64,000 nt of DNA. Origin: Dimorphilus gyrociliatus. Taxonomy: Eukaryota; Animalia; Annelida. A program made the translations under genes and the position numbers. A model generated the notes under the pieces. That model saw only the letters and a program-made list of their open reading frames with translations. It ran no database searches and had not been told where the DNA came from. The stretch is taken from contig CAJFCJ010000029.1 of the NCBI GenBank assembly GCA_904063045.1, positions 531,778-595,777 of the forward strand. The letters run 5' to 3'. Of this stretch, positions 4,120-57,736 are shown piece after piece. Position 1 is the first letter of the stretch, and each line of letters starts with the position of its first letter.

Positions 4120-4160
<41 letters not shown>

Positions 4161-4497
4161 CGTATATACTCTATATATATATATATATATATATACAGAT
4201 AGAAGGATAGATATGTCTAATGCACACCTTACATTTTATTAAGCATCGCTTCAATTCTTTGTTATGGATTGTGCACTAGTTTACAATTTATTTTGTTAAA
4301 AGAAAGATTTTATTAAAGGTGTGATTTGTATATAGTTAATTTTCACGAGATCATGAAACAAGTAAACACCTGAAGCCTATTATTATGGCAAGTGAACTGG
4401 AAATATACAACTGACGTCATAAGTTGGTCGTCAGATATTTTGCTGCCACCTCATGGGCTAGCACAAGCATTATTGTCGATGTAAAAGTCTAGTAAAG

Positions 4498-27089: not shown

Positions 27090-27276
27090 ATCGCTTCTCG
27101 GCCTTTTGGCTAAGATCAAAGTGTAGTATCTGTTCTAGTTAGTTTAACCGCTAACTGATAACACACTGTGTTATCTAATATGGTTAACAGTATTTTTGTC
27201 TTCAGAGAAAGCATTAAGCTTGCTTAAGTTTTCTCACGGGTTGACTTGGTATAGCAGTACCTCCAAGTTTGGCCCA
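27090..27276 (+). ncRNA. U2: U2 snRNA gene, uninterrupted host type (U2-A)
   Basis: Begins ATCGCTTCTCGGCCTTTTGGCTAAGATCAAAGTGTAGTATCTGTTCT. Stem IIa AGTTAG/CTAACT, stem IIb GATAACAC/GTGTTATC, Sm site ATTTTTG (27192), stem III with a CTTG loop, stem-loop IV with GCAGTAC. Confidence 0.97.
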
Positions 27277-28966
27277 TTTTCTTCTACGGAAGAAAATTTC
27301 TACTCTAAAACAATAGCACATATAAGGGAAAAGAACCTCTTGTCCTTTTGAGGTTAAGTGGGATTTTCAGTACATTTATACAATTTATTTTTATTTATGT
27401 TCCAGAAATGGTCCACGCTACCGGGTAGTATGAAAAAAGCTTCTACGTCGGCATTATCATATTGCAGAAGAATCAAACCACAATTGCTTTCTTTCTTCAT
27501 AACAAGAATTATAAATCAACGTTTCTTCAGCGCTTGAAACTCTGGAAGGCCAAGTGTGGACGGCGGAAAAATAATTTATTATTTGTATAATTATCTGGTG
27601 GACGTGTGGCATGTGGAGAAAAAGTGGCAGAAGTACACGTCGGTGATTTACTATTCACTGCCCAATCTCCAGACATCTAACTGGAAAAAGCATTACAACT
27701 ATTATTAGACGCTTCCAATCAAGTTAACACTCACACATGCCAATCCTGAACTCCCTCATCATGAAATTTTGGTTGTCATCTACGTCGTAGATGGTCTTGT
27801 CCTCTACTTCTAAATCGTAGTTGTGTTGGCGATGCCTCCAGTGGACATAGTGGTAGATTAGAACTATCTTACGCGATTGGTTCTCGGTATTTTCTGCGGT
27901 CAAAGGATCAATAAGCTTTCACAGGATTTCTCCTGGTTTCACTTGGTACTACATAACAACCAAGCAACGGCGGCGGCGTTTTGAAGGTTTCTATACACGC
28001 TCGCTATGTATTATTTCGAAATCCACATACCCTTTCACATTCGCGTTGTTAACGGTTCCATTGGACATATCTCTTGCGCGTCTATAGTTTTTGAATTTAC
28101 CCTTTTTATCAAATTATTAGCGGGAAACAACGCATTGGTAAAACTGGTGCACTTTTGACTACTTGGCGCACTATTTTTTACCGGAGTGATCCCTGCCTCC
28201 ACTTCCAGTAGATATAAATGTATCGCCGAAATTTGTATCGCCCTTGTAACCCCTAGAAAAGACTGGAGTACAAACAAAACTTTTTATTGATGAGTCGGAT
28301 AATTCGGTCTATCTGGTATCTATATACTGTAATTCTTTAAAGTCAAACTGTTCTAAATCGAATTTTATAAAGATTAATTACAAAATAACAGAATTCAAAA
28401 ATAAAAAACCACTTAAATGAAACTTTAGAAAAAAACCGAATGATAATCTTGATACAGTTAAAAATTTTTTGAAGATTAAACTGTAAATTTCAAAAAGTAT
28501 AAGTATCACTTCTTTCCTATTTCACTAAATTTAAAGATAATATTAGTACACGAGAAAAAGGAATAATGACGCCATCTACCAGATAAATAACGACTGATAA
28601 ATTGGAAAGATACGCCATCTACAGACATAAGCATCCGTTAAAAATGCCATCATACGCCATCTACAAATTGCTGAATTTGCAAAAACGCCGTCTACCGTTT
28701 GTAAAAGAAACTTCAAAGTGCTACCAAATTAAAAAAAAAAGCCGTTAATAACCTATTCTCAATAATCTAGTCGCTCTAATATTTTTGAATTAGCATTGAA
28801 AAAATATTTCACAAGAATTCTTAATCAATATGAAGTGGAAACCGCTCCGTGCGTTTATGAAAATAAGATATTACTACAAAAAGGTTCTAAATTTCGAATC
28901 GCAGGGACAAAAAGTAACGGAAATAGGCTCGAAACGCATAAAAAAACTGATGAAACGATGGATGTT
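27277..28966 (+). repeat. U2 array spacer, short unit (U2 start to U2 start 1877 bp)
   Basis: 27277-28140 matches 35130-35993. 28141-28880 matches 38612-39366. The whole spacer recurs inverted at about 49919-51613. Confidence 0.9.
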
Positions 28967-29154
28967 ATCGCTTCTCGGCCTTTTGGCTAAGATCAAAGTG
29001 TAGTATCTGTTCTAGTTAGTTTAATCGCTAGCTGGCAATCCATTGGGTTGCCTTAATAACGATTACGGGATTTTTGTGTGGTCTGGGTTCCTAGAAGCTT
29101 GCTTCAAAGAATCCTCGGGTTGACTTGGTCTAGCAGTACCTCCAAGTTCGGCCC
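28967..29154 (+). ncRNA. U2: Chimeric full-length U2 gene: host nt 1-39 plus element-borne U2-B nt 40-188
   Basis: The upstream flank and nt 1-39 are identical to U2-A. Downstream of about nt 58 the sequence differs but folds into all U2 stems and keeps the Sm site GATTTTTG. Confidence 0.92.
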
Positions 29155-32100
29155 TTCTTCTCAATGGAGAAGGCCTCACTTAAGACCTCCCAAGGTGGAA
29201 CAGTTACAAAACAGCCCTTTTCAGGGCTACCGGAGGAGCAGATGACGATGGGCAGGGCTGTACAAAGTAACGACGGCTCCTCTCTATCTGAGCTCATGGA
29301 CGAGTCTCCTGTTCGACGTGATGACGAGATGGAAGACGCGGCAAAGCAGGATGCGGGCTCTTTAGCTAGCGTCCCCGCGGAAGACAACGGCCTGGACTTT
29401 GGTCCGGCAGTGGGCGCTGCAGAGGACGAGGATGCTGGATACATGGCGGATATGTTATGTGCGGCTGATGTGCGGCTGGCCTCTCAAGAACGTCTTCTCT
29501 GCCTTCCCGCGGCCCGACGCTCCTTCCCTCCTCGTTCTTTGTTTACTCCTCCTGCCGATCCTGTGTGTGTGTGTGTGCCTGTTTCGGACAACAACTCTCC
29601 CATCTCCGTTCCCGTCACCTCTACACCTGTCTCGCGTGTTATGGACATTACCGGTTCTCCCTCCCCCTCTTCTACCTCTACTACCTCTACTACTACTACC
29701 ACTGCTACTACGGCTGCATCTTCTTCCTCTTCGGTTCTGGGTGCCCCCTCTGCCGTCCTCTCTTCCTCTTCTGCTACTGCTGATCCGGTTTCGTCGAGGG
29801 TGAGTACGGCTGTTCCTGGCGGTCATGTTTCTGTGTCTGTCCCTCCTTCTCGTCCCCCGTCCAAGTCCCGTCCCGCCCCATCTGTTGTTACTGTTGCTGT
29901 CCCTGTACCTGACCGTTCCCCTATCTATACTCGTTCCCTCGCGGCCAAGAAGAAGAAGGCTGCTTCTTCTCCTGCACCCGCAATAGCCCCCATAAGGGTT
30001 GCTACGCAAACTTTTTACAACTCCGAACGGCGTCGTTCGGTTGGTGGTGCCTCTGCTGTTGTCGCCGCTGTTCCTCCCTCGTCCGCCATTGTACCTGTTG
30101 ATAATTCAAAATCATCCTGTGGGACTTCGGTTAGCGTGGCCGGTACTCCGGTTAACGCTCCCACAGATAGGCCTCAGCCAACCGCTAATCCCTCCGCTGC
30201 CCCTGTCTGTGAGAAGAATCTTTCTCCCACGAGTAGGCCTGCGCCGGCCCCTGTCCTAATCAGGCAGCGGCTGACTCAGACCGTGTGACAATTCCTCCCA
30301 ACGCGCCTAGGCCTCCGCCGGTCGTTGCTTCTGTGTCCGCGCAATGTCCTTGCAAGGTGTCGCCCTGCGTGTGCATTTCCGGAGCTAATGTCTCCGCCGC
30401 GTCTCCTCCTACCGTTCCCCTTCTCCCTACCGACATCCCGTTAACCTATCCTCTTCTGGATAGAATGTGCCCTGTTTGCAACAACTTTTCCGGCACTACC
30501 AACAGGATTTCAGCCCACATCCGCTCCGTCCACGCTAAGCAAGTGACCTTTATGTGTCGGGGCTGTCGCCATTTCTTCCGTTCACTGGGGATTGTGAAGA
30601 GACATTTCAACCGCGATCATGGGGGTCATCCCTCGTCCATCTATTTAGATGACTCGGACTCTCCTGCCGCTGCATCCCAGTCCCCCCTTCCCAGCCCATT
30701 GTCCAACGCATCTCTGTTGGGCCTTCCCCCGCCACCATTCCCACTCTTCCCGCTCTGCCGAATGGCTCGTTTGCGAAAGTGGTCAAATCTCCCCCCCCGG
30801 CTCTTCCTTCCGCAAAGGCTCTCTTGCCGCTCGCCACTCTGCCGCCGTCGCCTTCTAAAAACAAAAATAATAGTAAGATCAGGAAACCCCGTCCCCGTAA
30901 GGTTATCTCCTCCTCAGCACTCGTCCCAAAAATACCCCCGGCCAGTGCGATCCCAGATTCGGGTTCGGTTGTTTCTTCCTCCTCTTCTAGGGCCACCCTT
31001 GCACGACCGACGGAGGCTGGGAAACCTCCTCCTAAAGTCGGTGCTCCGACCAAGACAGTTCGTTCCCCCCCAACTACAGGTCCGAACCCCTCTGCCCAAG
31101 CTCGGATTTCCCCTCCTAAAGAGCGGATTTCCCCGCCTAAAGGTCAGATTTCCCCGCCTAAAGTTAATAAGGGGTTGAGCTCTCCGGACTCGGCCGCTGG
31201 TCCTGCCTCCGTGATGTCTCCCCCGCCTCCCCCGCGCCCTTCTTCCACAAGCCTAAGTCAACTTATCCGTGAAGAACGCGTCGCCTCTAATCCCTCCCCA
31301 CCTAGGCCTACCCTTGCCCCCGGTATCGACTCGTCACCGGTGGCGCCCCTGGTGGTCCCCGATTCCCCCCCGCCGCCTTCGTGCGATACGGAGAGGGATG
31401 GTTCCTACGACGAGGACGCTGACATTATCCCCAGTTCTCTCGTCCCTTCTTCCTCTTCTCCCCCCCGCTTTCTTGTCCCCGCTCTCCCGCTCGAGATTGG
31501 TCTCCCCCTCCGCGGTTGGATCGGTCGGTGTCCCGTGACCACGAGGTTACTAATGATAATAATAATAACAGTCTCCTCCCCGACCCCCCGTCCCCTCCTC
31601 CTGCGCACGTGTCCCATCAACAGCTTGAACGGGAACGCGAGGAGCAACTTTCGGGTTTCGCTGCCGCTATCCTAACTGAGTTTGCCCCCAAGATTATTGG
31701 AAGTCAGTCCGAATGGTCCCGCGTGGAAGAAGTTTTCGACGCCTGGGTTCTCGCCATTTCCAACGCCAAGTCCAGGGTGCATGAGAGTGCTGGCGGTAGA
31801 GTCGCGAATAGGAACTTTGCTCGCCCCCTCCGAATGCGGCTAACAATCAATGGCAAGCGGCTACTAATATCCAAAGGGCCTACAAGCGTAATCCGGCTAG
31901 CACTTTCCGCCGTATCGCTAACCCTGAGGAGACCAAGTGTTCCGCTTCCATTGAAGATATGACCTCTTTCTTTATTGAATCGGTCGCCCCTCCTCCTCCT
32001 TCATATCAGTGGTCTCCCGACAGGGAGTTTCTTCCGGCCGCGGCCCCACCGCCTGACCCAGAAGACGTTCAACTCGCCAATGAAATCCCCCCTGCTCTCA

Positions 32101-34981
32101 CCCCCGATACCTTTAACTTCGAAAGCAGGGCCATCGACGGCATAGAATTGACCGACCCTAACCACCCCTTGCTCCGTCCCCCATCCCGCGCTGAGATTGT
32201 CGGCCAGCTTAAGCGAACCAACAACTCTGCTCCCGGTCTTGACGGCATCACCTACAAGGATCTTAAGAAATTCGATCCGAAAGGCTTAACCCTCAGGGCT
32301 TTCTATAGGTTGTTCTGGCGACATGGACAGATTCCCTCCTGTCTGAAGCGGTCTCGCACTATAATGATCCCCAAAAAGGATCTCGACCCTTCGCTGCCGG
32401 CCAACTGTAGGCCTATTGCCCTCCTCTCTACCATTTACAAACTTTTTAGTAGTCTGCTGGCCCGGCGTCTGAGTAGATGGGCCAGAGACAATGATATCCT
32501 TAGCAAGGAGCAAAGGGGATTTACTACGGCCCCCGGTGTCTTCGAGCATAACTTCGCCTTGACCTCGGCCCTTGACGAGGCCAAACGTAGTGATAAACGC
32601 ATCTGCCTAGGATTCGTCGATATTGCGCAAGCCTTCCCCTCTATCCCCCATTGCGTTATCTTCGACATGTTGTCCCTTGTAGGAGTGCCGCCCAGTCTCG
32701 TTAACCTTATCCGGAATGTATATACCAACGCCACTACGGAGGTTATCACGACGGAAGGATGCACAGCACCCATTTCCATCCACAAAGGTGTTAGGCAGGG
32801 CGACGGTCTCAGCCCCTTCCTCTTTAATCTCTGCTTTGAGGGAGCTCTACGTAGCGTTAACGCCTCAAAAGACAGAGATGGGTTCAAGATCGCCGCTCAG
32901 GCGGCTGTCCTAGGTCTAAGGTCCGTATCCATTTGCGGTCTAGCCTATGCCGATGACCTTGTGGTGGTCGCAAACTCTCGCCGTGGTCTGCAACACCTCC
33001 TCAATGTTGCCGAGCGGTCGGCGGGTCTGGCAAACCTAAAATTTGCTCCGCGTAAATGCGCTACCTTGTGCCTCCATCGTGGAGTCGCCGACCCGACCCC
33101 CCTATTCGTGGCTAACGAACCTATTAAGGCGCTAGGCCTTGAGGAGACCTACACCTATCTGGGCACGCCCATTGGCTTCAGGAAGGAGCTTCTCAAGGAT
33201 GATGGGGTGATTGAGAGGATCCGCTCCCTTCTTCGGCTTACTATGGAGTCCAACCTCGCGCCCTGGCAAAAGGTGTCCTCCATCAAGGCCTTCATTCTCC
33301 CCCGTATTCAATTCGCACTGCGAACCCACCGTTTCCTTAAGGAGGAACTAGCGGACCTCGATTCGATGGTTATTCGCGCTATCCGCACCACCATGGCCAC
33401 CACAAACAACGCCGCTAGGTCGTTCTTTGCCGCTCCCGCTAAAATGGGCGGTGTAGGCCTAATCCCCACTAGGGTAGAGGTGGACATAGCCCGTGTGGGA
33501 CACACTTTTCAACTCCTCAAATCGGAGGACCCTACCATCCGCTTTATCGCCTGCGCAACTCTTGTTAAGGCCGCTAAGGCCAGAGTGGCCCGCGGCACCG
33601 CTCTTACAGGGGACGTTTTGGCCTCTTACCTCAACGGGTCAACGACTCCTCCTTTCTCCTCTTCCTCCTCTTCCGCTCAGACGGTGATGTCAGTCACTAG
33701 GTCGGCCTCCAGGCGCTTGCACAAATCTATAAACCTTGAATGGCACCTTGATGACGCCCTTACGCCTACCATTACCGCCACGGTGAGTAGGAGTTGGCAC
33801 CAGAACCAGCCGCAATTTCGCCACGAGGTCCAATCCAACTGGCAGGAATTGTCGTTTGGGGATGACGAACGCAACCTCGAACCCCTAGCTATCCGTATCC
33901 GTCGCACCCACGAACCTTTCCCATTACTTAGGTCGGCGGTCACGGAGCTCAATGTTAGAGAGTTCGCTAAATTGGCGGAGCAGGGCAGGTCCTTCCAGGA
34001 CACCTGCTTGCACCCTGTCTCCAACCATTTCCTTTACACCGGCTTCGGCTTGCGGTATAAGGACTACCGATTCATCTTTCGGGCTCGGCTGGGTCTTCTC
34101 CAGACCAATGCCGTCAAGTCCAGATACAGTGCCCGGGTTAGGCCTGATTGCAGGCGGTGCCACTTCCAAGTGGAATCAGTGCGGCATGTTCTAAACAACT
34201 GCCGTACTGGGTATGGCCTGTACGGTGATCGACATAACGCCATCCAGGATCGTCTGGTCAAAGGTGCCCGCCTGGCGCCCGGTTCCACCATTACGGTAAA
34301 CAGGACGTTGCCCGAATCCTCCACTGCCCTTCGCCCTGACATAGTGATTAGGTGCGCGGATGACAGGGTGGTGCTGATCGACGTCACGGTCCCCTTTGAG
34401 AGGCCTGGCGCCCTTGCTCGCGCTGCCCAGGAGAAGATCAACAAGTATGCGGTCCTAAAAACTGAGCTGGAGGGACAAGGCAAGGCAGTAGAGATTCTAC
34501 CATTTGCTGTTGGTTCTTTGGGCGCCTGGTGCAGGGGGAACTCCAAGGTCTTTCGGGCTCTGGGCATAGCGTTCGCTTACCGGGGTATGCTGTCCCAGCT
34601 GTGCGTGGCGGAAGCGATTCGTGGCTCAAAGGACGCCTACGACGCGCACATTAACGGTCATTAAAATAAAAATGTACTGGCTATCAACTGTTTATTCGTT
34701 TTTTCGTCTGTTATGTGTCTGTGATATGTTAAGGGTGTCGTAAATTATTGTAAAGTGCCTGTGTCACTGGGATTTACCCCTTTTCCCTTGCTTCTACATC
34801 AATCCTATTCTGCTATTTGTTCTCATGTGCCGGTTCCTGTTGGTCCACATTGGCCTTTAACTCCTGTCGTCTATGTCACTTATACCCCTCTTTTTTGTTT
34901 ACCTAACTCCCTCTATGCCATTCATCCTGCAATTGAAAAACACTGTCTCCTCCTTTTACCTGTATAATACATTTAAATAAC
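29006..34981 (+). mobile_element. U2-targeting non-LTR retrotransposon (RLE type, Utopia-like), full-length copy E1, 5976 bp
   Basis: Flanked 5' by U2 nt 1-39 and 3' by host U2 resuming at nt 40 (AAATAAC|TCTGTTCT at 34982). Contains an RT + RLE ORF and a 317-nt 3' UTR with no poly(A). Confidence 0.95.
29164..34664 (+). CDS. Retrotransposon polyprotein of about 1830 aa (2x C2H2 zinc fingers, reverse transcriptase, CCHC knuckle, PD-(D/E)xK restriction-like endonuclease), broken here by about four 1-nt homopolymer indels
   Basis: C2H2 fingers CPVC..H..H and CRGC..H..H (30468-30620). RT motifs RPIALLSTIYKLF, GVRQGDGLSPFLF and LAYADDL. CRRC..H..C plus RHN. RPDIV..LIDVTVPFE..KINKY and GSLG. The missing bases are present in copies E4/E5. 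Confidence 0.93.
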
Positions 34982-35128
34982 TCTGTTCTAGTTAGTTTAA
35001 CCGCTAACTGATAACACACTGTGTTATCTAATATGGTTAACAGTATTTTTGTCTTCAGAGAAAGCATTAAGCTTGCTTAAGTTTTCTCACGGGTTGACTT
35101 GGTATAGCAGTACCTCCAAGTTTGGCCC
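34982..35128 (+). pseudogene. U2: Displaced 3' part (nt 40-186) of host U2-A
   Basis: Identical to 27129-27275 and followed by the same downstream spacer. Confidence 0.95.
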
Positions 35129-38100
35129 ATTTTCTTCTACGGAAGAAAATTTCTACTCTAAAACAATAGCACATATAAGGGAAAAGAACCTCTTGTCCTT
35201 TTGAGGTTAAGTGGGATTTTCAGTACATTTATACAATTTATTTTTATTTATGTTCCAGAAATGGTCCACGCTACCGGGTAGTATGAAAAAAGCTTCTACG
35301 TCGGCATTATCATATTGCAGAAGAATCAAACCACAATTGCTTTCTTTCTTCATAACAAGAATTATAAATCAACGTTTCTTCAGCGCTTGAAACTCTGGAA
35401 GGCCAAGTGTGGACGGCGGAAAAATAATTTATTATTTGTATAATTATCTGGTGGACGTGTGGCATGTGGAGAAAAAGTGGCAGAAGTACACGTCGGTGAT
35501 TTACTATTCACTGCCCAATCTCCAGACATCTAACTGGAAAAAGCATTACAACTATTATTAGACGCTTCCAATCAAGTTAACACTCACACATGCCAATCCT
35601 GAACTCCCTCATCATGAAATTTTGGTTGTCATCTACGTCGTAGATGGTCTTGTCCTCTACTTCTAAATCGTAGTTGTGTTGGCGATGCCTCCAGTGGACA
35701 TAGTGGTAGATTAGAACTATCTTACGCGATTGGTTCTCGGTATTTTTCTGCGGTCAAAGGATCAATAAGCTTTCACAGGATTTCTCCTGGTTTCACTTGG
35801 TACTACATAACAACCAAGCAACGGCGGCGGCGTTTTGAAGGTTTCTATACACGCTCGCTATGTATTATTTCGAAATCCACATACCCTTTCACATTCGCGT
35901 TGTTAACGGTTCCATTGGACATATCTCTTGCGCGTCTATAGTTTTTGAATTTACCCTTTTTATCAAATTATTAGCGGGAAACAACGCATTGGTATTTAAC
36001 ACTCACATTAACAATAAGAAGCCTCTTCATAGTTCGGGTGATCATTGCTCTATCCTCCTAAAATGCACTATACAACACTCTTCCTCGAGGAACGAGTGCA
36101 TTTCTGAGCCTCCTTACTGATGAGTGGAATGTTATGGTCGCTCTCGTCTGCATATAATGTTCTGCGCTTTAGTCAATCCATGCTCATCTTCCGCACATTC
36201 TTTCATCTGCAAATTTGGTAGAACAATTCCCTTCGACGCTCATTCTTTCCTCTTTTCAATCAAGGTTCCAAACATATACATGATGGCTTAACCATTAATC
36301 AAATGTCTGTACGAACTATTATTGTCTGTCTCTTCTAACTCGTAATTACTTTGCATTCCTAAAAGCGATAATAGGGGTAGTTTAACGTTTGATTGATGTT
36401 GCTGAAATTCGTCATTCTGTTTGGACCACATCGGATTATTAGGTGACGGTGAAATAACTGATATTATTACCTTATCTCCTGATTAATGAATACGTCCTTT
36501 ACAATTCTACCAAAAGTTCTTTTTCTTCGGATTCGCGCGTTACTATTCCACCGTTGACTGGTTCCTTGCTCCTAATGGCCTATTGCCTTCATTAACCCGC
36601 CGTTGGCGCTTTTTTTCGCGCCGTTATTATGAAGTAGGCCATAATCAATTAAAATAAACAACCTTTTCACATTCCTCTATTTTAAAGGCTTCACAGGATA
36701 TATGTGTTGCGCTTTTATGATATTTCCAAAATGTCTTTTTTTAAAAGTACTAACGACAAACAACGCATTGGTATTCAACACTTACATTGCGAACAAGAAG
36801 CTCCTTCACACTTAAAATGAAGATTGCTCAATCCTAATATCGCGTTCAGGAAAAAGTCTTCTTTCAGGCTCGGATATATTATACGCCTCCTTATTCATCA
36901 GTCGAATGTTACGGCAACTCTCGTCTGTATTATGTATTGCGCCATGGCTAGTCGATGTTAATCTACACGTGTAAGATTTAAGATAATGCTCCTATTGGCA
37001 CGAGTACATTATGAGCCTTCCAATTAATGAGTCGAATGTTATAGTCACTCTCGTATGCATATAATGTATTGCGCCATGGCCAGTCGATGTTAATCTTACA
37101 CGTGTTCTTTTTACCGCAATTTCGTAGAACACTTCCCTTCAACGCTCACTCTTTCCTCTTTTCACTATCGGTTCCAAACATATAGAAGATAGCTTAGCCA
37201 TTAATTTAATGTCTTTAAAACTGTTGTTAGCCGCCAGTTTTAAGTCGTAATTGCTTTTGCAATCTCCATAGTGGTAATAGCGGTAGATTGAGGTGTTGTT
37301 GATTTTCCTGAAATTCGAGATTTTGTTCAGACTACATCAGATGTTTAAGGGAGACTACAAGGACTGATGTTTTACCTTATCTCCTGATTAAGAAATCAAT
37401 TGACTTTATAACAATTCTTCCAAAATTTCTGTTTATTGAGTTTCACACGCTAATTTTCCATCGTTCACGGGTCAGTTTCTTCAATATCCACTGTTAGCGC
37501 AGTTTTCCCGCCGTTATCTTTAAGTACATCGTCCATCATTTCTTAAGCCTCCGATTCGTTTTTGTTTTTAACTGTTCTACTGGACATGTCACTTGTTTGT
37601 TCCCTAACTTCTTTCGTTGAGATCTTTGGTTTCTCCAATTTCTTTCTTGCAGTTTGGTTTAGAAAGATACATCCGAAAATCAGTGTACTGCATATGATCA
37701 AAAGATAGAAATATAAATAAATAAAAAGTAAAAGTTTTATCAAACTGAAAATCAGGACCGTAATAATCACACCCTTGTTGAAAACCAACATTGAAGATTT
37801 TACAAATGTCTGTCGTCTATGAAGCAGAAAATTGCAAATTCTACAATGCAAATAATGATACGGAAAGAAAAGAGAGTTTCTTAGACCTAGTCTACATTTT
37901 GAATTTTCATTACCGTGCTTCTTCACTATCTAGAGGAAACGCCTTAGCACGAATGTTCAGCAATACAACACTATTTCTACCCGACAATGTACCGCTTGGC
38001 ACAAATTCAAGACACTTGTCGCACATACAAATCTACTTATAAACAGAGATTGTGCAAAATACGAAAAATTTACGTAATATATCGCAAGATTACCTCCATT

Positions 38101-39366: not shown

Positions 39367-39986
39367 CCGCTAACGTCCCAAAGTAGGGCAGATACATCAG
39401 CAGAACAGCGCTTTTCAGGGCTACCAGGAGTTCCGGTTGCTGTAGCAGAGAGGGTGTCGCTGGATAGCTCCAATGGGAGCGGTCCGACATCCGGAGTGCC
39501 ATCGGATAACCCCCACCCGGGAGGTAGTCCGGCACAGAGGAGACCAACGGCTCGGGGAACGATGCCACCAACGACGCAGATGACGATGGGTGGGGCTGTA
39601 CAAAGTAACGACGGCTCCACTTTATCCGAGCTCATGGACAAGTCTCCTGTTCGGCGTGATGGTGAGAAGGAAGACGCGGCAAAGCAGGACGCGGGCTCTT
39701 TAGCTAGCGTCCCCGCTGAAGACAACGGCCTGGATTCCGGTCTGGCAGAGGGCGCTGCGGAGGATGAGGATGCTGGCTACATGGCGAATATGTTATGTGC
39801 GGCTGATGTGCGGCTGGCCTCTCAAGAACGTCTTCTCTGCCTTCCCGCGGCCCGACGTTCCTTCCCTCCTCGTACTTTGTTTATTCCTCCTGCCGATCCT
39901 GTGTGTGTGTGTGTGTGTGTGCCTGTTTCGGATAACCTCTCTAACTCTCCCATCTCCGTTCCCGTCACCTCTACACCTGTCTCGCG
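39367..39986 (+). mobile_element. Diverged 5' fragment of the same retrotransposon family (older subfamily)
   Basis: Encodes FSGLP...QMTMGGAVQSNDGSTLSELMDKSP...PVTSTPVSR. It has 48 extra codons relative to E1. The U2 module and everything past TPVSR are missing. Confidence 0.85.
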
Positions 39987-42239: not shown

Positions 42240-43709
42240 AAAAAAGAACAATAGGCCATTGGGAGCAAGGAACCAGTCAACGGTGGAATAGTAACGCGCG
42301 AATCCGAAGAAAAAGAACTTTTGGCAGAATTGCAATATAAAGGAAGTATTTATTAATCAGGAGATAAGGTAATAATATCAGTTATTTCACCGTCACCTAA
42401 TAATTCGATGTGGTCCAAACAGAATAATGAATTTCAGCAACATCAATCAAACTTTAAACTACCCCTATTATCGCTTTTAGGAATGCAAAGTAATTACGAG
42501 TTAGAAGAGACAGAAAACAATAGTTCGAACAGACATTTGATTAATGGTTAAGCTATCGTGTATATGTTTGGAATATTTAGTGAATTGAGGAAAGAGAGAG
42601 AGAGTTCAAGGGAATTGTTCTACCAAATTGCGGATGAAAGAACGCGCGGAGGATTAACATGGATTGACTAAAGCGCAGAACATTATATGCAGAGGAGAGT
42701 GATTATAACATTCAATACATCAAAAGGAGACGTATAATGTACTGATATCTGGAGATAGAATATCGTACAGTGGATTTTAGGAAGATAAAGCAACGATAAT
42801 CCGAACTATGAAGAGGCTTCTTGCTGTTAATGTAAGTGTTAAATACCAATGCGTTGTTTCCCGCTAATAATTTGATAAAAAGGGTAAATTCAAAAACTAT
42901 AGACGCGCAAGAGATATGTCCAATGGAACCGTTAACAACGCGAATGTGAAAGGGTATGTGGATTTCGAAATAATACATAGCGAGCGTGTATAGAAACCTT
43001 CAAAACGCCGCCGCCGTTGCTTGGTTGTTATGTAGTACCAAGTGAAACCAGGAGAAATCCTGTGAAAGCTTATTGATCCTTTGACCGCAGAAAAATACCG
43101 AGAACCAATCGCGTAAGATAGTTCTAATCTACCACTATGTCCACTGGAGGCATCGCCAACACAACTACGATTTAGAAGTAGAGGACAAGACCATCTACGA
43201 CGTAGATGACAACCAAAATTTCATGATGAGGGAGTTCAGGATTGGCATGTGTGAGTGTTAATTTGATTGGAAGCGTCTAATAATAGTTGTAATGCTTTTT
43301 CCAGTTAGATGTCTGGAGATTGGGCAGTGAATAGTAAATCACCGACGTGTACTTCTGCCACTTTTTCTCCACATGCCACACGTCCACCAAATAATTATAC
43401 AAATAATAAATTATTTTTCCGCCGTCCACACTTGGCCTTCCAGAGTTTCAAGCGCTGAAGAAACGTTGATTTATAATTCTTGTTATGAAGAAAGAAAGCA
43501 ATTGTGGTTTGATTCTTCTGCAATATGATAATGCCGACATAGAAGCTTTTTTCATACTACCCGGTAGCGTGGACCATTTCTGGAACATAAATAAAAATAA
43601 ATTGTATAAGTGTACTGAAAATCCCACTTAACCTCAAAAGGACAAGAGGTTCTTTTCCCTTATATGTGCTATTGTTTTAGAGTAGAAATTTTCTTCCGTA
43701 GAAGAAAAT
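42240..43709 (-). repeat. Inverted copy of the U2 downstream spacer (about 35129-36580)
   Basis: For example, 42261 GGGAGCAAGGAACCAGTCAACGG is the reverse complement of about 36550. The MYYFEIHIPF ORF appears at 35860 (+) and 42978 (-). Confidence 0.88.
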
Positions 43710-43856
43710 GGGCCAAACTTGGAGGTACTGCTATACCAAGTCAACCCGTGAGAAAACTTAAGCAAGCTTAATGCTTTCTCTGAAGACAAAAATACTGTTA
43801 ACCATATTAGATAACACAGTGTGTTATCAGTTAGCGGTTAAACTAACTAGAACAGA
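43710..43856 (-). pseudogene. U2: Displaced 3' part (nt 40-186) of host U2-A
   Basis: Reverse complement of 34982-35128. Confidence 0.95.
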
Positions 43857-44159
43857 TATATTTAAATGTATTATACAGGTAAAAGGAGGAGACAGTGTTT
43901 TTCAAATGCAGGATGAATGGCATAGAGGAAGTTAGGTAAACAAAAAAGGGGTAAAAGTGACATAGACGACGGGAGTTAAAGGCCATTGTGGACCAACAGG
44001 AACCGGCACATGAGTAACAAATAGCAGAATTAGGTAATAGTATGGTAGCAAGGGAAAAGGGGTAAATCCCAGTGACACAGGCACTTTACAATAAATGACG
44101 ACACCCTTAATATATCACAGACACATAACGAACGAATAAACAATTAATAGCCAACAATT

Positions 44160-47100
44160 TTAATGACCGTTAATGTGCGCGTCGTAGGCGTCCTTTGAGC
44201 CACGAATCGCTTCCGCCACGCACAGCTGGGACAGCATACCCCGGTAGGCGAACGCTATGCCCAGAGCCCGAAAAACCCTGGAGTTCCCCTTGCACCAGGC
44301 GCCCAAAGACCCAACAGCAAATGGTAGAATCTCTACTGCTTTGCCTTGTCCCTCCAGCTCCGTTTTCAAGACCGCGTACTTATTGACCTTCTCCTGGGCA
44401 GCACGAGCAAGGGCGCCAGGCCTCTCAAAGGGGACCGTGACGTCGATAAGCACCACCCTGTCATCCGCGCTCCTAATAACTATATCAGGGCGAAGGGCAG
44501 TGGAGGATTCGGGCAACGCCCTGTTTACCGTAATGGTGGAACCGGGCGCCAGGCGGGCACCTTTGACCAGACGATCCTGGATGGCGTTATGGCGATCGCC
44601 GTACAGGCCATACCCAGTACGGCAGTTGTTTAGGACATGCCGCACTGATTCCACTTGGAAGTGACAACGCCTGCAATCAGGCCTAACCCGGGCACTGTAT
44701 CTGGACTTGACTGCATTGATCCGGAGGAGACCCAACCGAGCCCGAAAGATGAATCGATAGTCCTTATACCGCAAGCCGAAGCCGGTGTAGAGGAAATGGT
44801 TGGAGACAGGGTGCAAGCAGGTGTCCTGAAAGGACCTGCCCTGCTCCGCCAATTTAACGAACTCTCTTACACTGAGCTCCGTAACCGCCGACCTAAGTAA
44901 TGGGAAAGGTTCGTGGGTGCGACGGATACGGATAGCTAAGGGTTCAAGGTTGCGTTCATCATCCCCAAACGACAATTCCTGCCAGTTGGATTGGACCTCG
45001 TGGCGAAATTGCGGCTGGTTTTGGTGCCAACTCCTACTCACCGTGGCGGTAATGGTAGGCGTAAGGGCGTCATCGAGGTGCCATTCAAGATTTATGGATT
45101 TATGCAAGCGCCTGGAAGCCGACCTAGTGACTGACATCACCGTCTGAGCGGAAGAGGAGGAAGAGGAGAAAGGAGGAGTCGTTGACCCATTAAGGTAAGA
45201 GGCCAAAACAACACCTGTAAGAGCGGTGCCGCGAGCCACTCTGGCCTTAGCGGCCTTAACGAGAGTTGCGCAGGCGATAAAGCGGATGGTAGGGTCCTCC
45301 GATTTAAGGAGTTGAAAAGTATGTCCTACACGGGCTATGTCAACCTCTACCCTAGTGGGGATTAGGCCGACACCGCCCATTTTAGCGGGAGCGGCAAAGA
45401 ACGACCTAGCGGCGTTGTTTGTGGTGGCTATGGCGGTACGAATAGCGCGAATAACCACCGAATCGAGGTCCGCTAGTTCCTCCTTAAGGAAACGGTGGGT
45501 TCGCAGTGCGAACTGAATACGGGGGAGAATGAAGGCCTTGATGGAGGACACCTTTTGCCAGGGCGCGAGGTTGGACTCCATAGTAAGCCGAAGAAGGGAG
45601 CGGATCCTCTCAATCACCCCATCATCCTTGAGAAGCTCCTTCCTAAAGCCAATGGGCGTGCCCAGATAGGTGTAGGTCTCCTCAAGGCCTAGCGCCTTAA
45701 TAGGTTCGTTAGCCACGAATAGGGGGGTCGGGTCGGCGACTCCACGATGGAGGCACAAGGTAGCGCATTTACGCGGAGCAAATTTTAGGTTTGCCAGACC
45801 AGCCGACCGCTCGGCAACATTGAGGAGGTGTTGCAGACCACGGCGGGAGTTTGCGACCACCACAAGGTCATCGGCATAGGCTAGGCCGCAAATGGATACG
45901 GACCTTAGGCCAAGGACAGCCGCCTGGGCGGCGATCTTGAACCCATCTCTGTCTTTGGAGGCGTTAACACTACGTAGAGCTCCCTCAAAGCAGAGATTAA
46001 AGAGGAAGGGGCTGAGACCGTCGCCCTGCCTAACACCTTTGTGGATGGAAATGGGTGCTGTGCAACCTTCCGTCGTGATAACCTCCGTAGTGGCGTTGGT
46101 GTATACGTTCCGGATAAGGTTAACGAGACTGGGCGGCACTCCTACGTGGGACAACATGTCGAAGATAACGCAATGGGGGATAGAGGGGAAGGCTTGCGCA
46201 ATATCAACGAATCCGAGGCAGATGCGCTTATCACTACGTTTGGCCTCGTCAAGCGCCGAGGTCAAGGCAAAGTTGTGCTCGAAGACACCGGGGGCCGTAG
46301 TAAACCCCCTTTGCTCCTTGCTAAGGATATCATTGTCTCTGGCCCATCTACTCAGACGCCGGGCCAGCAGACTACTAAAAAGTTTGTAGATGGTAGAGAG
46401 GAGGGCAATAGGCCTACAGTTGGCCGGCAGCGAAGGGTCGAGATCCTTTTTGGGGATCATTATAGTGCGAGACCGCTTCAGACAGGAGGGAATCTGTCCA
46501 TGTCGCCAGAACAACCTGTAAAAAGCCCTGAGGGTTAAGCCTTTCGGATCGAATTTCTTAAGATCCTTGTAGGTGATGCCGTCAAGACCGGGAGCAGAGT
46601 TGTTGGTTCGCTTAAGCTGGCCAACAATCTCAGCGCGGGATGGGGGACGGAGCAAGGGGTGATTAGGGTCGGTCAATTCTATGCCGTCGATGGTCCTACT
46701 TTCGAGGTTAAAGGTATCGGGGGTGAAAGCAGGGGGGATTTCATTGGCGAGTTGAACGTCCTCTGGGTCAGGCGGTGGGGCCGCGGCCGGAAGAAACTCC
46801 CTATCGGGAGACCACTGATATGAAGGAGGAGGTGGGGCGACCGATTCGATAAAGAAAGAGGTCATATCTTCAATGGAAGCAGAACACTTGGTCTCCTCAG
46901 GGTTAGCGATACGGCGGAAAGTGCTAGCCGGATTACGCTTGTAGGCCCTTTGGATATTAGTAGCCGCTTGCCATTGATTGTTAGCCGCATTCGGAGGGGG
47001 GCGAGCAAAGTTCCTATTCGCGAATCTATTACCAGTACCCTCATGCACCCTGGACTTGGCGTTGGAGATGGCGAGAACCCAGGCGTCGAAAACTTCTTCT

Positions 47101-47216
47101 ACGCGGGACCATTCGGACTGACTTCCAATAATCTTGGGGGCAAACTCAGTTAGGATAGCGGCAGCGAAACTCGAAAGTTGCTCCTCGCGTTCGCGTTCAA
47201 GCTGTTGATGGGACAC
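44160..47216 (-). CDS. Uninterrupted RT-CCHC-RLE frame of E2 (1018 codons, no zinc fingers, out of frame with the 5' ATG)
   Basis: ORF track. The frame opens at GTG, not ATG. The upstream ORF 47242-47889 stops three codons after the splice junction. Confidence 0.75.
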   Translation of the reverse strand: MSHQQLEREREEQLSSFAAAILTEFAPKIIGSQSEWSRVEEVFDAWVLAISNAKSRVHEGTGNRFANRNFARPPPNAANNQWQAATNIQRAYKRNPASTFRRIANPEETKCSASIEDMTSFFIESVAPPPPSYQWSPDREFLPAAAPPPDPEDVQLANEIPPAFTPDTFNLESRTIDGIELTDPNHPLLRPPSRAEIVGQLKRTNNSAPGLDGITYKDLKKFDPKGLTLRAFYRLFWRHGQIPSCLKRSRTIMIPKKDLDPSLPANCRPIALLSTIYKLFSSLLARRLSRWARDNDILSKEQRGFTTAPGVFEHNFALTSALDEAKRSDKRICLGFVDIAQAFPSIPHCVIFDMLSHVGVPPSLVNLIRNVYTNATTEVITTEGCTAPISIHKGVRQGDGLSPFLFNLCFEGALRSVNASKDRDGFKIAAQAAVLGLRSVSICGLAYADDLVVVANSRRGLQHLLNVAERSAGLANLKFAPRKCATLCLHRGVADPTPLFVANEPIKALGLEETYTYLGTPIGFRKELLKDDGVIERIRSLLRLTMESNLAPWQKVSSIKAFILPRIQFALRTHRFLKEELADLDSVVIRAIRTAIATTNNAARSFFAAPAKMGGVGLIPTRVEVDIARVGHTFQLLKSEDPTIRFIACATLVKAAKARVARGTALTGVVLASYLNGSTTPPFSSSSSSAQTVMSVTRSASRRLHKSINLEWHLDDALTPTITATVSRSWHQNQPQFRHEVQSNWQELSFGDDERNLEPLAIRIRRTHEPFPLLRSAVTELSVREFVKLAEQGRSFQDTCLHPVSNHFLYTGFGLRYKDYRFIFRARLGLLRINAVKSRYSARVRPDCRRCHFQVESVRHVLNNCRTGYGLYGDRHNAIQDRLVKGARLAPGSTITVNRALPESSTALRPDIVIRSADDRVVLIDVTVPFERPGALARAAQEKVNKYAVLKTELEGQGKAVEILPFAVGSLGAWCKGNSRVFRALGIAFAYRGMLSQLCVAEAIRGSKDAYDAHINGH

Positions 47217-47898
47217 GTGCGCAGGGGGAGGGGACGAGGGGTCAGTGAGGAGACCTCAACGAAACCGGATCAGCAGTAGAAGAAGAGGAAGAGAGGACGG
47301 CAGAGCGGGCACCCAGAACCGAAGAGGAAGAAGATGCAGCCGTAGTAGCAGTGGTAGTAGAGGTAGTAGAGGTAGAAGAGGGGGAGGGAGAACCGGTAAT
47401 GTCCATAACACGCGAGACAGGTGTAGAGGTGACGGGAACGGAGATGGGAGAGTTAGAGAGGATATCCGAAACAGGCACACACACACACACAGGATCGGCA
47501 GGGGGAATAAACAAAGAACGAGGAGGGAAGGAGCGTCGGGCCGCGGGAAGGCAGAGAAGACGTTCTTGAGAGGCCAGCCGCACATCAGCCGCACATAACA
47601 TATCCGCCATGTATCCAGCATCCTCGTCCTCTGCAGCGCCCACTGCCGGACCAAAGTCCAGGCCGTTGTCTTCCGCGGGGACGCTAGCTAAAGAGCCCGC
47701 ATCCTGCTTTGCCGCGTCTTCCATCTCGTCATCACGCCGAACAGGAGACTTGTCCATGAGCTCAGATAGAGTGGAGCCGTCGTTACTTTGTACAGCCCTA
47801 CCCATCGTCATCTGCTCCTCCGGTAGCCCTGAAAAGGGCTGTTTTGTAACTGTTCCACCTTGGGAGGTCTTAAGTGAGGCCTTCTCCATTGAGAAGAA

Positions 47899-48047
47899 GG
47901 GCCGAACTTGGAGGTACTGCTAGACCAAGTCAACCCAAGGATTCTTCGAAGCAAGCTTCTAGGAACCCAGACCACACAAAAATCCCGTAATCGTTATTAA
48001 GGCAACCCAATGGATTGCCAGCTAGCGATTAAACTAACTAGAACAGA
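47899..48047 (-). ncRNA. U2: Element-borne U2-B module (nt 40-188) of E2, promoterless, preceded directly by the E3 3' end
   Basis: TCTGTTCTAGTTAGTTTAATCGCTAGC...GGCCC follows ...TTTAAATAAC of E3. Confidence 0.9.
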
Positions 48048-49879
48048 GTTATTTAAATGTATTATACAGGTAAAAGGAGGAGACAGTGTTTTTCAAATGC
48101 AGGATGAATGGCATAGAGGAAGTTAGGTAAACAAAAAGAAGGGGTAAAAGTGACATAGACGACAGGAGTTAAAGGCCAATGTGGACCAACAGGAACCGGC
48201 ACATGAGTAACAAATAGCAGAATTAGGAAATAGTATGGAAGCAAGGGAAAAGGGGTAAATCCCAGTGACAGAGGCACTTTACAATAATTTACGACACCCT
48301 TAATATATCACAGACACATAACGAACGAATAAACAATTAATAGCCAGTAATTTTAATGACCGTTAATGTGCGCGTCGTAGGCGTCCTTTGAGCCACGAAT
48401 CGCTTCCGCCACGCACAGCTGGGACAGCATACCCCGGTAGGCGAACGCTATGCCCAGAGCCCGAAAGACCTTGGAGTTCCCCCTGCACCAGGCGCCCAAA
48501 GAACCAACAGCAAATGGTAGAATCTCTACTGCCTTGTCTTGTCCCTCCAGCTCCGTTTTCAAGACCGCATACTTGTTGATCTTCTCCTGGGCAGCGCGAG
48601 CAAGGGCGCCAGGCCTTTCAAAGGGGACCGTGACGTCGATCAGCACCACCCTGTCATCCGCGCTCCTAATCACTATATCAGGGCGAAGGGCAGTGGAGGA
48701 TTCGGGCAACGCCCTGTTTACCGTAATGGTGGAACCGGGCGCCAGGCGGGCACCTTTGACCAGACGATCCTGGATGGCGTTATGGCGATCACCGTACAGG
48801 CCATACCCAGTACGGCAGTTGTTTAGGACATGCCGCACTGATTCCACTTGGAAGTGACAACGCCTGCAATCAGGCCTAACCCGGGCACTGTATCTGGACT
48901 TGACTGCATTGATCTGGAGAAGACCCAACCGAGCCCGAAAGATGAATCGGTAGTCCTTATACCGCAAGCCGAAGCCGGTGTAGAGGAAATGGTTGGAGAC
49001 AGGGTGCAAGCAGGTGTCCTGAAAGGACCTGCCCTGCTCCGCCAATTTAGCGAACTCTCTTACATTGAGCTCCGTGACCGCCGACCCTCAACGAAACCGG
49101 ATCAGCAGTAGAAGAAGAGGAAGAGAGGACGGCAGAGGGGGCATCCAGAACCGAAGAGGAAGAAGATGCAGCCGTAGTAGCAGTGGTAGTAGAGGTAGTA
49201 GAGGTAGAAGAGGGGGAGGGAGAACCGGTAATGTCCATAACACGCGAGACAGGTGTAGAGGTGACGGGAACGGAGATGGGAGAGTTAGAGAGGTTATCCG
49301 AAACAGGCACACACACACACACAGGATCGGCAGGGGGAATAAACAAAGAACGAGGAGGGAAGGAGCGTCGGGCCGCGGGAAGGCAGAGAAGACGTTCTTG
49401 AGAGGCCAGCCGCACATCAGCCGCACATAACATATCCGCCATGTATCCAGCATCCTCGTCCTCTGCAGCGCCCACTGCCGGACCAAAGTCCAGGCCGTTG
49501 TGTTCCGCGGGGACGCTAGCTAAAGAGCCCGCATCCTGCTTTGCCGCGTCTTCCATCTCGTCCTCACGTCGAACAGGAGACTTGTCCATGAGCTCAGATA
49601 GAGAGGAGCCGTCGTTACTTTGTACAGCCCTGCCCATCGTCATCTGCTCCTCCGGTAGCCCTGAAAAGGGCTGTTTTGTAACTGTTCCACCTTGGGAGGT
49701 CTTAAGTGAGGCCTTCTCCATTGAGAAGAAGGGCCGAACTTGGAGGTACTGCTAGACCAAGTCAACCCAAGGATTCTTCGAAGCAAGCTTCTAGGAACCC
49801 AGACCACACAAAAATCCCGTAATCGTTATTAAGGCAACCCAATGGATTGCCAGCTAGCGATTAAACTAACTAGAACAGA
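48048..49879 (-). mobile_element. Retrotransposon copy E3, spliced isoform 2 (lacks the equivalent of 29800-33931), non-autonomous, 1832 bp
   Basis: The junction GAGG|GTCGGC at 49086/49085 joins the same donor to the CTTAG acceptor. RT is absent. The RLE-coding tail and 3' UTR are retained. Confidence 0.92.
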
Positions 49880-49918
49880 TACTACACTTTGATCTTAGCC
49901 AAAAGGCCGAGAAGCGAT
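49731..49918 (-). ncRNA. U2: Chimeric full-length U2 gene (host nt 1-39 plus U2-B of E3)
   Basis: 188 nt with the host upstream region at 49919 onward. Two substitutions versus E1 U2-B, both at unpaired positions. Confidence 0.92.
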
Positions 49919-51613
49919 AACATCCATCTTTTCATCAGTTTTTTTATGCGTTTCGAGCCTATTTCCGTTACTTTTTGTCCCTGCGATTCGAAATTTAGAA
50001 CCTTTTTGTAGTACTATCTTATTTTCATAAACGCACGGAGCGGTTTTCGCCTCACATTGATTTAGAATTTTTGTGAAATATTTTTTCATTGCTAATTCAA
50101 AAATGTTAGAACGACTAGATTATTGAGAATAGGTCACTAACTGCTTTGTTTTTAAAATTTGGTAGCACTTTGAAGTTTCCTTTTACAAACGGTAGACGGC
50201 GTCTTTTGCAAATTCAGTAATTTGTAGATGGCGTATGATGGCATTTTTAACGGATGCTTATGTCTGTAGATGGCGTATCTTTCCAATTTATCAGTCGTTA
50301 TTTATCTGGTAGATGGCGTCATTATTCCTTTTTCTCGTGTACTAATATTATCTTTAAATTTAGTGAAATAGGAAAGAAGTGATACTTATACTTTTTGAAA
50401 TTTACAGTTTAATCTTCAAAAATTTTTAACTGTATCAAGATTATCATTCGGTTTTTTTTCTAAAGTTTCATTTAAGTGGTTTTTTATTTTTGAATTCTGT
50501 TATTTTGTAATTAATCTTTATAAAATTCGATTTAGAACAGTTTGACTTTAAAGAATTACAGTATATAGATACCAGATAGACCGAATTATCCGACTCATCA
50601 ATAAAAAGTTTTGTTTGTACTCCAGTCTTTTCTAGGGGTTACAAGGGCGATACAAATTTCGGCGATACATTTATATCTACTGGAAGTGGAGGCAGGGATC
50701 ACTCCGGTAAAAAATAGTGCGCCAAGTAGTCAAAAGTGCACCAGTTTTACCAATGCGTTGTTTCCCGCTAATAATTTGATAAAAAGGGTAAATTCAAAAA
50801 CTATAGACGCGCAAGAGATATGTCCAATGGAACCGTTAACAACGCGAATGTGAAAGGGTATGTGGATTTCGAAATAATACATAGCGAGCGTGTATAGAAA
50901 CCTTCAAAACGCCGCCGCCGTTGCTTGGTTGTTATGTAGTACCAAGTGAAACCAGGAGAAATCCTGTGAAAGCTTATTGATCCTTTGACCGCAGAAAAAT
51001 ACCGAGAACCAATCGCGTAAGATAGTTCTAATCTACCACTATGTCCACTGGAGGCATCGCCAACACAACTACGATTTAGAAGTAGAGGACAAGACCATCT
51101 ACGACGTAGATGACAACCAAAATTTCATGATGAGGGAGTTCAGGATTGGCATGTGTGAGTGTTAACTTGATTGGAAGCGTCTAATAATAGTTGTAATGCT
51201 TTTTCCAGTTAGATGTCTGGAGATTGGGCAGTGAATAGTAAATCACCGACGTGTACTTCTGCCACTTTTTCTCCACATGCCACACGTCCACCAGATAATT
51301 ATACAAATAATAAATTATTTTTCCGCCGTCCACACTTGGCCTTCCAGAGTTTCAAGCGCTGAAGAAACGTTGATTTATAATTCTTGTTATGAAGAAAGAA
51401 AGCAATTGTGGTTTGATTCTTCTGCAATATGATAATGCCGACGTAGAAGCTTTTTTCATACTACCCGGTAGCGTGGACCATTTCTGGAACATAAATAAAA
51501 ATAAATTGTATAAATGTACTGAAAATCCCACTTAACCTCAAAAGGACAAGAGGTTCTTTTCCCTTATATGTGCTATTGTTTTAGAGTAGAAATTTTCTTC
51601 CGTAGAAGAAAAT
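49919..51613 (-). repeat. U2 array spacer, short unit, inverted orientation
   Basis: Reverse complement of about 27277-28966. The proximal part carries the SNP type seen at 38612-39366. Confidence 0.9.
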
Positions 51614-51760
51614 GGGCCAAACTTGGAGGTACTGCTATACCAAGTCAACCCGTGAGAAAACTTAAGCAAGCTTAATGCTTTCTCTGAAGACAAAAATACT
51701 GTTAACCATATTAGATAACACAGTGTGTTATCAGTTAGCGGTTAAACTAACTAGAACAGA
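51614..51760 (-). pseudogene. U2: Displaced 3' part (nt 40-186) of host U2-A
   Basis: Reverse complement of 34982-35128. Confidence 0.95.
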
Positions 51761-52077
51761 GTTATTTAAATGTATTATACAGGTAAAAGGAGGAGACAGT
51801 GTTTTTCAATTGCAGGATGAATGGCATAGAGGGAGTTAGGTAAACAAAAAAGAGGGGTATAAGTGACATAGACGACAGGAGTTAAAGGCCAATGTGGACC
51901 AACAGGAACCGGCACATGAGAACAAATAGCAGAATAGGATTGATGTAGAAGCAAGGGAAAAGGGGTAAATCCCAGTGACACAGGCACTTTACAATAATTT
52001 ACGACACCCTTAACATATCACAGACACATAACAGACGAAAAAACGAATAAACAGTTGATAGCCAGTACATTTTTATT

Positions 52078-57578: not shown

Positions 57579-57587
57579 TGAGAAGAA

Positions 57588-57736
57588 GGGCCGAACTTGG
57601 AGGTACTGCTAGACCAAGTCAACCCGAGGATTCTTTGAAGCAAGCTTCTAGGAACCCAGACCACACAAAAATCCCGTAATCGTTATTAAGGCAACCCAAT
57701 GGATTGCCAGCTAGCGATTAAACTAACTAGAACAGA
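57588..57736 (-). ncRNA. U2: Element-borne U2-B module (nt 40-188) of E4, preceded directly by the E5 3' end
   Basis: Same sequence as 29006-29154. Confidence 0.9.

Follow-up and report, generated by a model that had tools for sequence, protein, structure and literature searches.

A Utopia-lineage retrotransposon of Dimorphilus gyrociliatus that carries the 3' part of its U2 target and structurally rebuilds the interrupted gene

What becomes of a U2 small nuclear RNA (snRNA) gene into which a site-specific retrotransposon inserts, and how can such an element persist there? Site-specific retrotransposons are thought to persist by targeting genes of high copy number, the loss of which can be tolerated. 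The copy number of U2 is low, and the persistence of the Utopia retrotransposons in it was left unexplained by Kojima and Jurka (2015, PMC4640811). The question is raised by a stretch of 64,000 nucleotides (nt) on contig C29 of the annelid Dimorphilus gyrociliatus (hereafter the window; coordinates without a contig name refer to its whole length, and C10, C20, C52 and C272 are other contigs of the assembly), in which an element of ~6 kb is inserted at nt 39/40 of U2 genes and itself begins with a second, diverged version of U2 nt 40-188, here termed module B (U2-B) as opposed to the host type A (U2-A). A sequence-only reading of the window had claimed that the element carries this module as its own and rebuilds with it the gene that it disrupts. 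The structural side of this claim is strongly supported, because B occurs only together with the element, precisely spliced retrocopies retain it, copies are stacked on regenerated target sites, and a second family shows the same layout.

The U2 module as part of the transposed unit

The first copy (cp1, plus strand) consists, from 5' to 3', of the host promoter, U2 nt 1-39, module B, a 21-nt hairpin and ~5.8 kb of element body, followed by U2-A from nt 40 to its end and by spacer (see Table 1 for coordinates). The proposed splitting of a host U2-A gene at nt 39/40 is confirmed: the displaced half (34982-35135) is 100% identical to the corresponding part of the intact U2-A gene (27129-27282), and the normal spacer lies behind it (35136-35994 versus 27283-28140, 99.9% identical). 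The first 149 nt of the element are indeed a different U2 sequence, as B (29006-29154/61) differs from U2-A by 40 substitutions in 149 aligned columns (74.7% blastn identity). Host promoter, nt 1-39 and the 5' end of the element form a complete U2 gene that is matched at full length by the Rfam U2 model (RF00004; gathering score 46 bits), and over the 130 nt upstream the chimeric genes share 98-100% identity with intact A genes; such complete genes are formed by the outer copies only (cp1, cp2a and cp3a).

The same module heads all five window copies (29006 on the plus strand; 49879, 48047, 63709 and 57736 on the minus strand), as had been stated, and also two more copies found on C272; all seven assembly copies with a preserved 5' end start with B. 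A search of the whole assembly with a query made up of B and the initial 240 nt of element body gave seven full matches of 98-100% identity, all of which continue into the element, and B is nearly invariant among them (0-2 substitutions in 156 nt). Neither a stand-alone B without the element nor, among the assembly copies, an element headed by A was found, and the element body itself was detected only on C29, C272 and at the start of C20. The sequence-only reading had reckoned with the possibility that B is an ordinary host paralogue which adjoins the element; units of U2-B plus element would then have been spread by segmental duplication or unequal crossing-over. Such a history would suit the confinement of all copies to one array on C29 plus the short contig C272 as well as the inverted and duplicated spacers within this array; however, no host-paralogue U2-B lacking the element exists in the assembly, all seven B matches having the element.

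The spliced copies speak against a host paralogue, too. Relative to cp1, cp2b lacks exactly 29800-31571 and cp2a exactly 29800-33930, whereas both retain B; one donor (29799/29800) and two acceptors (31571/31572 and 33930/33931) were used. The two copies are retrocopies of two spliced isoforms, and because these precisely spliced copies still begin with B, the module was part of the spliced, reverse-transcribed RNA. Moreover, the inner copies cp2b and cp3b begin with B exactly at nt 40, immediately after the 3' end of the preceding element, the displaced halves are always of type A, and a dead family on C10 shows the same arrangement at a locus that is unrelated (see below). Spread of a host paralogue by duplication is largely refuted by the spliced isoforms with B, the lack of B alone and the C10 layout, and is regarded as very improbable.

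The 3' junction of the element is exact at U2 nt 39/40: all five element 3' ends in the window run into TCTGTTCT (nt 40), either of U2-A or of B. The 5' junction can be placed anywhere in nt 1-57, because A and B are identical through nt 57. A different origin of the upstream U2 piece would be a long target-site duplication, made afresh with each insertion, or else an artefact of the assembly. Short duplications do occur in relatives: ~20-bp target-site duplications are made by reptile families (PMC4640811), and one of ~22 bp (U2 nt 40-61) is present in the metagenome scaffold L054 that is described below. A fresh duplication, however, would be of type A, whereas the upstream piece is ~25% diverged from A and nearly identical in seven copies; the A-B divergence excludes this possibility. 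An assembly artefact is rejected as well, since 31-mers across both module junctions are present in sequencing runs of two studies. Either origin is considered scarcely credible.

In both window stacks (Table 1) the 3' end of one element directly abuts nt 40 of the B module of the next. The regenerated site in the rebuilt gene has therefore itself been targeted again, which is strongly supported by the two window stacks and, for a third copy, by C272. This contig of 10.5 kb (1-10537) repeats the cp2a/cp2b stack with one mismatch and many 1-nt gaps, and an extra full-length copy tops the stack in place of the host U2 5' end; C272 represents a third insertion that is polymorphic or else an alternative assembly left unpolished. 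Over ~6 kb, the three full-length copies (29006-34981, 51761-57736 and 57737-63709) are free of substitutions; all that distinguishes them are 15 indels of a single base within runs of C or G, none of them shared between copies. Accordingly, the family is very young. The indels and the frame breaks that result from them may be assembly errors.

A further copy of the element (39367-39986 and C20:1-3227, minus strand) begins only at element position 272. Upstream of its start, 209 nt of unrelated sequence take the place of the U2 promoter region (its final 75 nt only), U2 nt 1-39, module B and the beginning of the first open reading frame (ORF1). Identity to the family amounts to 91% in the first 400 nt of this copy and to ~99% in the remainder (on C20); recombination or a variant 5' end may account for it.

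The window contains nine U2 matches in the Rfam scan (one intact gene, three full-length chimeric genes and five 3' parts). In the whole assembly there are at least 15 among the best candidates scored: three intact A-type genes (in the window, at C20:7656-7848 and at C52:15823-16015), the three chimeric genes, displaced or inner halves, two further B halves on C272 and two variants on C10. The window forms the end of C29, which terminates inside the U2 array, and matching spacers are found in the first 8.4 kb of C20. Within the array, the spacers 35136-36585 and 42249-43702 constitute a 1.45-kb inverted repeat of 94.8% identity; they lie downstream of plus- and minus-strand U2 units, respectively, and the orientation of the array flips between them.

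Table 1. Coordinates of U2 genes, U2 parts and element features in the window
Feature	Position	Strand	Remarks
Intact host U2-A gene (empty-target reference)	27090-27282	+	RF00004, 159.3 bits; 100% identical to C20:7656-7848
Host U2 promoter-proximal spacer of chimeric gene	28837-28966	+	1 mismatch in 130 nt versus upstream of intact U2-A
Host U2 nt 1-39	28967-29005	+	5' junction ambiguous up to nt 57
Full-length chimeric U2 (cp1)	28967-29161	+	Rfam, 140.0 bits
Element-borne module B, U2 nt 40-188	29006-29154	+	Stems IIa, IIb, III, IV and Sm site; 7 copies, element always follows
Terminal hairpin after stem-loop IV	29155-29175	+	ORF1 ATG (29164) in loop; folds at -10.4 kcal/mol
ORF1, first open frame	29164-30288	+	374 amino acids as assembled, low-complexity, without Pfam match
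Intron-like segment	29800-31571	+	GTGAGT donor, TACTAAT...AACAG acceptor; second acceptor CTTAG ends at 33930
Two C2H2 zinc-finger motifs	30468-30620	+	Frame split from reverse transcriptase by 1-nt indels as assembled
Open frame with reverse transcriptase (~32367-33140), CCHC finger (~34149) and restriction-like endonuclease	31812-34661	+	Endonuclease motif RPD...D...K..KY
3' untranslated region	34665-34981	+	Ends ...AAATAAC at 34981 (cp1 3' terminus), without poly(A) tail
Displaced host U2-A, nt 40 to end, then normal spacer	34982-35135	+
Stack 2: U2 1-39, B, spliced cp2a, B, spliced cp2b, A half (43858-43703)	43703-49918	-
Stack 3: U2 1-39, B, full cp3a, B (at 57736), full cp3b, A half (51760-51607)	51607-63747	-
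Full-length chimeric U2 (stack 2)	49724-49918	-	Rfam, 138.9 bits
Full-length chimeric U2 (stack 3)	63555-63747	-	Rfam, 126.2 bits
U2 3' parts identical to U2-A	34982-35135, 43703-43858, 51607-51760		Rfam
U2 3' parts of B type, directly behind element 3' end	57581-57736, 47892-48047		Rfam

Structural constraint on the module and the state of the rebuilt gene

A consensus structure built with RNAalifold from the U2 types A, A', B, C and D recovers the U2 stems I, IIa, IIb, III and IV, with double compensatory changes in 16 of 47 pairs. In B, all 36 pairs of the 3' domain are kept despite the 40 substitutions relative to A, 19 of which are located in paired columns. When as many changes were placed at random, 22.5 ± 2.5 pairs were left, and 36 pairs were reached in none of 20,000 trials (the test structure was derived from the same sequences, which favours them, yet it equals the textbook U2 fold of the Rfam consensus line). 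Between B and the further type C, 35 of 36 pairs are kept with 29 substitutions in 148 positions, as compared with 26 ± 2.3 pairs in the simulation. No U2 type deviates in the Sm site (AUUUUUG) or in the loop residues of stem-loops III and IV. These data support an evolution of the module under U2-type constraint on structure and protein-binding sites. Between the spliced and the full-length lineage, B differs at 2 of 156 positions versus 3-7% in the element body; with so few sites, this lower divergence is only suggestive as a signal of selection.

U2-C itself is situated at C10:890480-890671 (136.3 bits) and is followed on the same strand by, in this order, an ATG-containing hairpin, a zinc-finger remnant and, in alternating frames, remnants of reverse transcriptase (RT) and endonuclease. 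Just past the endonuclease the element remnant stops, and the DNA beyond matches no part of the element; read by eye, it is a candidate for a transposase-like sequence. Judged by this succession of remnants, the locus is a second, dead family of the same layout with a module of its own. B and C are diverged by 20%, either of them from A by 27%, and the simplest reading would be a single capture of the module before the B and C families split, followed by a long life in the element lineage under U2-type constraint; that U2-C was kept by selection after the death of its element is only suggested. The other variant on C10, U2-D (C10:1053362-1053554, 137.9 bits), is a full-length U2 that is free of the element for 10 kb downstream and has the branch-point recognition sequence UUAGUA in place of GUAGUA; it may represent a variant snRNA or a pseudogene.

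In every U2 type, a hairpin of 8-9 bp whose pairing is kept by compensatory changes follows directly after stem-loop IV, outside the Rfam model (27276-27297 and 29155-29175 in the window; L048:666-688 and L049:552-569); the hairpin may belong to the mature RNA or act as a signal for 3' processing. In both B and C the ATG of ORF1 is placed in the loop of this hairpin.

A well-motivated reading of these features, which is held here with moderate confidence, is that of a self-healing insertion: The chimeric gene would most likely give a working U2 snRNA. Several observations weigh against it. With the start of ORF1 inside the hairpin, the element needs read-through; an ATTTC...AAAA motif behind the hairpin, which is common to the 3' flanks of U2-A, A' and D, is absent after B and C, so that snRNA 3'-end formation at B may be inefficient and read-through may be favoured. 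It could also be that the structure is constrained for an RNA function of the element itself and not for spliceosomal U2. In the assembled sequence of cp3a, stems I and IIb each contain a 1-nt deletion, which may be an assembly error. The location of all copies in one array plus one short contig implies few independent insertion events, and a search of sequencing runs for the sequences of the locus retrieved 17 matching runs, none of which is recorded as RNA.

The two points on read-through would fit a module that is borne by the element and serves the element only, the chimeric gene adding little or no functional U2. Its function could then consist in the regeneration of the target, in 5' homology for joining, or in an Sm core and trimethylguanosine capping for a nuclear re-import of the element ribonucleoprotein (RNP) similar to that of small nuclear RNPs (snRNPs). 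The three insertions into regenerated sites are in agreement with such a role, and the conserved Sm site and stem-loop IV loop fit the binding of snRNP proteins on any module-bearing RNA. However, target regeneration and 5' homology need a few tens of nt and not the stems IIb, III and IV that were kept by compensatory changes, and to our knowledge there is no precedent for an snRNP-like import of an element RNP. A module of benefit to the element alone is the main rival of the self-healing insertion and is considered rather unlikely.

Identity of the element and comparison with its relatives

The element is assigned to the Utopia lineage of retrotransposons without long terminal repeats (non-LTR) that have RT and restriction-like endonuclease (RLE), because its domain order, its U2-linked homologues and the nt 39/40 site fit the definition of Utopia as U2 snRNA gene-specific RLE non-LTR retrotransposons of the NeSL clade (PMC4640811). 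The assumption of the sequence-only reading that Utopia elements target this U2 site is borne out by the same publication, whose 3' junctions (S3 Fig) match. Like Utopia, the D. gyrociliatus element comprises N-terminal C2H2 fingers (one to three zinc fingers in Utopia), RT (Pfam RVT_1, E = 4e-29) and a C-terminal CCHC finger plus PD..D/ExK endonuclease, has its 3' junction just before TCTGTTCT and forms head-to-tail stacks in U2 arrays. Unlike Utopia as described, it has an intron and an annelid host, a phylum absent from the host list in PMC4640811. The assembled frames, to be set against the single long ORF of Utopia and other NeSL-clade elements, are unreliable, as they are broken differently in each otherwise identical full-length copy by private homopolymer indels; an exact look-up of the 374-amino-acid first ORF among transcript contigs gave no match.

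The best RT homologues are 30-38% identical over more than 90% of the query and belong to spider, barnacle and metagenome elements. In an alignment of seven proteins (six RT homologues were aligned) the residues C731/C734/H743/C748, R792-P793-D794, D808, K826 and K829-Y830 are invariant. All five homologues examined for U2 context lie in or beside U2 genes; those of spider, barnacle, L057 and L062 end at the same U2 site, and a 3' junction at this site is also seen in spider, L054 and L062. A candidate relative, P0057, was rejected, since it equals a plant-type L1.

The loci of seven relatives were compared with regard to their 5' ends. In the spider genome (L052), U2 nt 1-38 directly join the ATG of the element, with no module at the sequence-read 5' junction, and in L054 U2 nt 1-61 run straight into the element, again without a module. 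The D. gyrociliatus element is unlike these two relatives with a readable 5' junction, as its 5' end is a 149-nt diverged U2 3' domain plus terminal hairpin. L057 and the barnacle locus (L058) exhibit a short 5' U2 fragment plus a displaced 3' part in their pattern of Rfam matches, which suggests that they also lack a module; L055 and L062 show the 3' junction only, and in L053 no U2 was found within ~3 kb upstream of the ORF.

Two of the surveyed loci display additional insertion types. L053 (GCA_949826985.1; 1841-4235 and 8001-11296) is a U1/U2 cluster in which a second, different RT element ends within U2 at ~nt 24, not nt 39, beside a Utopia-type copy at the usual site. L061 (Joint Genome Institute metagenome 3300071567) is a U2 array whose U2 shares an extra A (GAUCAAAGUGUAGUA) with U2-A of D. 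gyrociliatus; it harbours a related, A-rich-tailed RT element at a place other than nt 39/40, which represents a different insertion type.

The proposed cycle, known systems and meaning

The transposed unit begins with a private copy of U2 nt 40-188 and the species-specific terminal hairpin. In the proposed cycle, the element would lack a promoter in front of the module and be transcribed from the host U2 promoter through nt 1-39 and B into its ORFs. The element RNA can be spliced, and the nick at which it is reverse-transcribed lies between U2 nt 39 and 40; splicing, reverse transcription and site are shown by the spliced retrocopies and the junctions. The U2 sequence that the cDNA carries at its 5' end would allow the 5' junction to be formed seamlessly within the identical nt 1-57. 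Each insertion yields a complete U2 gene (host promoter, nt 1-39 and B) together with a regenerated target, and the old 3' part is moved ~6 kb downstream. If a working U2 snRNA is made from the chimeric gene, the insertion would be nearly harmless in a genome with ~6 U2-A-type genes in the Rfam scan.

R2 in the 28S rDNA and SLACS, CZAR and NeSL-1 in spliced-leader genes are site-specific RLE elements that are promoterless and co-transcribed from their target gene, and the upstream target sequence on their RNA aids the formation of the 5' junction. Unlike the D. gyrociliatus element, they do not carry the rest of the target gene, and their insertions leave the target unit disrupted. The same logic of restoration is found in prokaryotes: phages, integrative and conjugative elements and genomic islands in tRNA or tmRNA genes carry the 3' part of the target in attP, so that the intact gene is restored and the old 3' end is displaced. 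These elements, however, are integrated by tyrosine-recombinase DNA recombination in bacteria and archaea, in contrast to the animal element, whose RNA is copied into the site by target-primed reverse transcription. Homing endonuclease genes in self-splicing introns or inteins are likewise parasites of a specific, essential, low-copy site that neutralise their own insertion, but do so by splicing from RNA or protein, whereas the D. gyrociliatus element would supply a replacement gene segment. Different enzymes are used by Keno (Tx1 clade, apurinic-endonuclease type), which shares the U2 site (PMC4640811), and by the Dada DNA transposons, which target snRNA and tRNA genes; in the text of the Dada paper the words restore, reconstitute and carry are absent, and the few uses of intact and disrupt are unrelated to target restoration. 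Full-text literature searches retrieved no paper in which Utopia or any other non-LTR element is described as bearing the remaining part of its target gene, in line with the sequence-only reading, to which no family was known that restores its target with an element-encoded, diverged snRNA half. The element is of a known family kind, Utopia, and its gene-rebuilding architecture was not found described in these searches.

It is conceivable, and put forward here only tentatively, that Utopia elements of hosts with few U2 genes generally bring along the missing part of the target gene, a hitherto unrecognised strategy by which insertions would be gene-neutral and the target regenerated. Intact U2 genes, not nt 1-38, were reported upstream of Utopia copies in Phytophthora, for which the authors discussed deletion or possible duplication, and the persistence of five families in ~10 U2 genes was called hard to understand (PMC4640811). 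In S3 Fig of the same work, the 3' junctions of different families are 6.5-7 kb apart on single contigs, a spacing that stacking via a regenerated target would produce. The upstream pieces in Phytophthora are identical to host U2, and an element-borne origin is thus indistinguishable there from a host origin; the single element span given (~5.4 kb, Utopia-5_PI) is too little to show that only a U2 piece lies between copies. A profile search for homologues gave no oomycete protein, and the extension to Phytophthora rests on the text of the paper and the S3 Fig coordinates. If the strategy were general, it would account for head-to-tail stacking among different families, for the intact U2 upstream of Phytophthora Utopia and for the persistence of several families in ~10 U2 genes. 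A considerable part of the cellular U2 snRNA of D. gyrociliatus would then be encoded by the transposon over three quarters of its length.

Due to the 25% divergence between A and B, the idea is directly testable with simple probes. If a self-healing insertion is the true explanation, it would offer a natural design for "safe" targeted insertion, with a payload behind a self-repairing RNA gene, and sequence encoded by a transposon would enter the spliceosome. The element would then represent a eukaryotic, RNA-mediated counterpart of the tRNA-gene restoration by bacterial integrative elements, which would answer the puzzle of its persistence in a low-copy gene.

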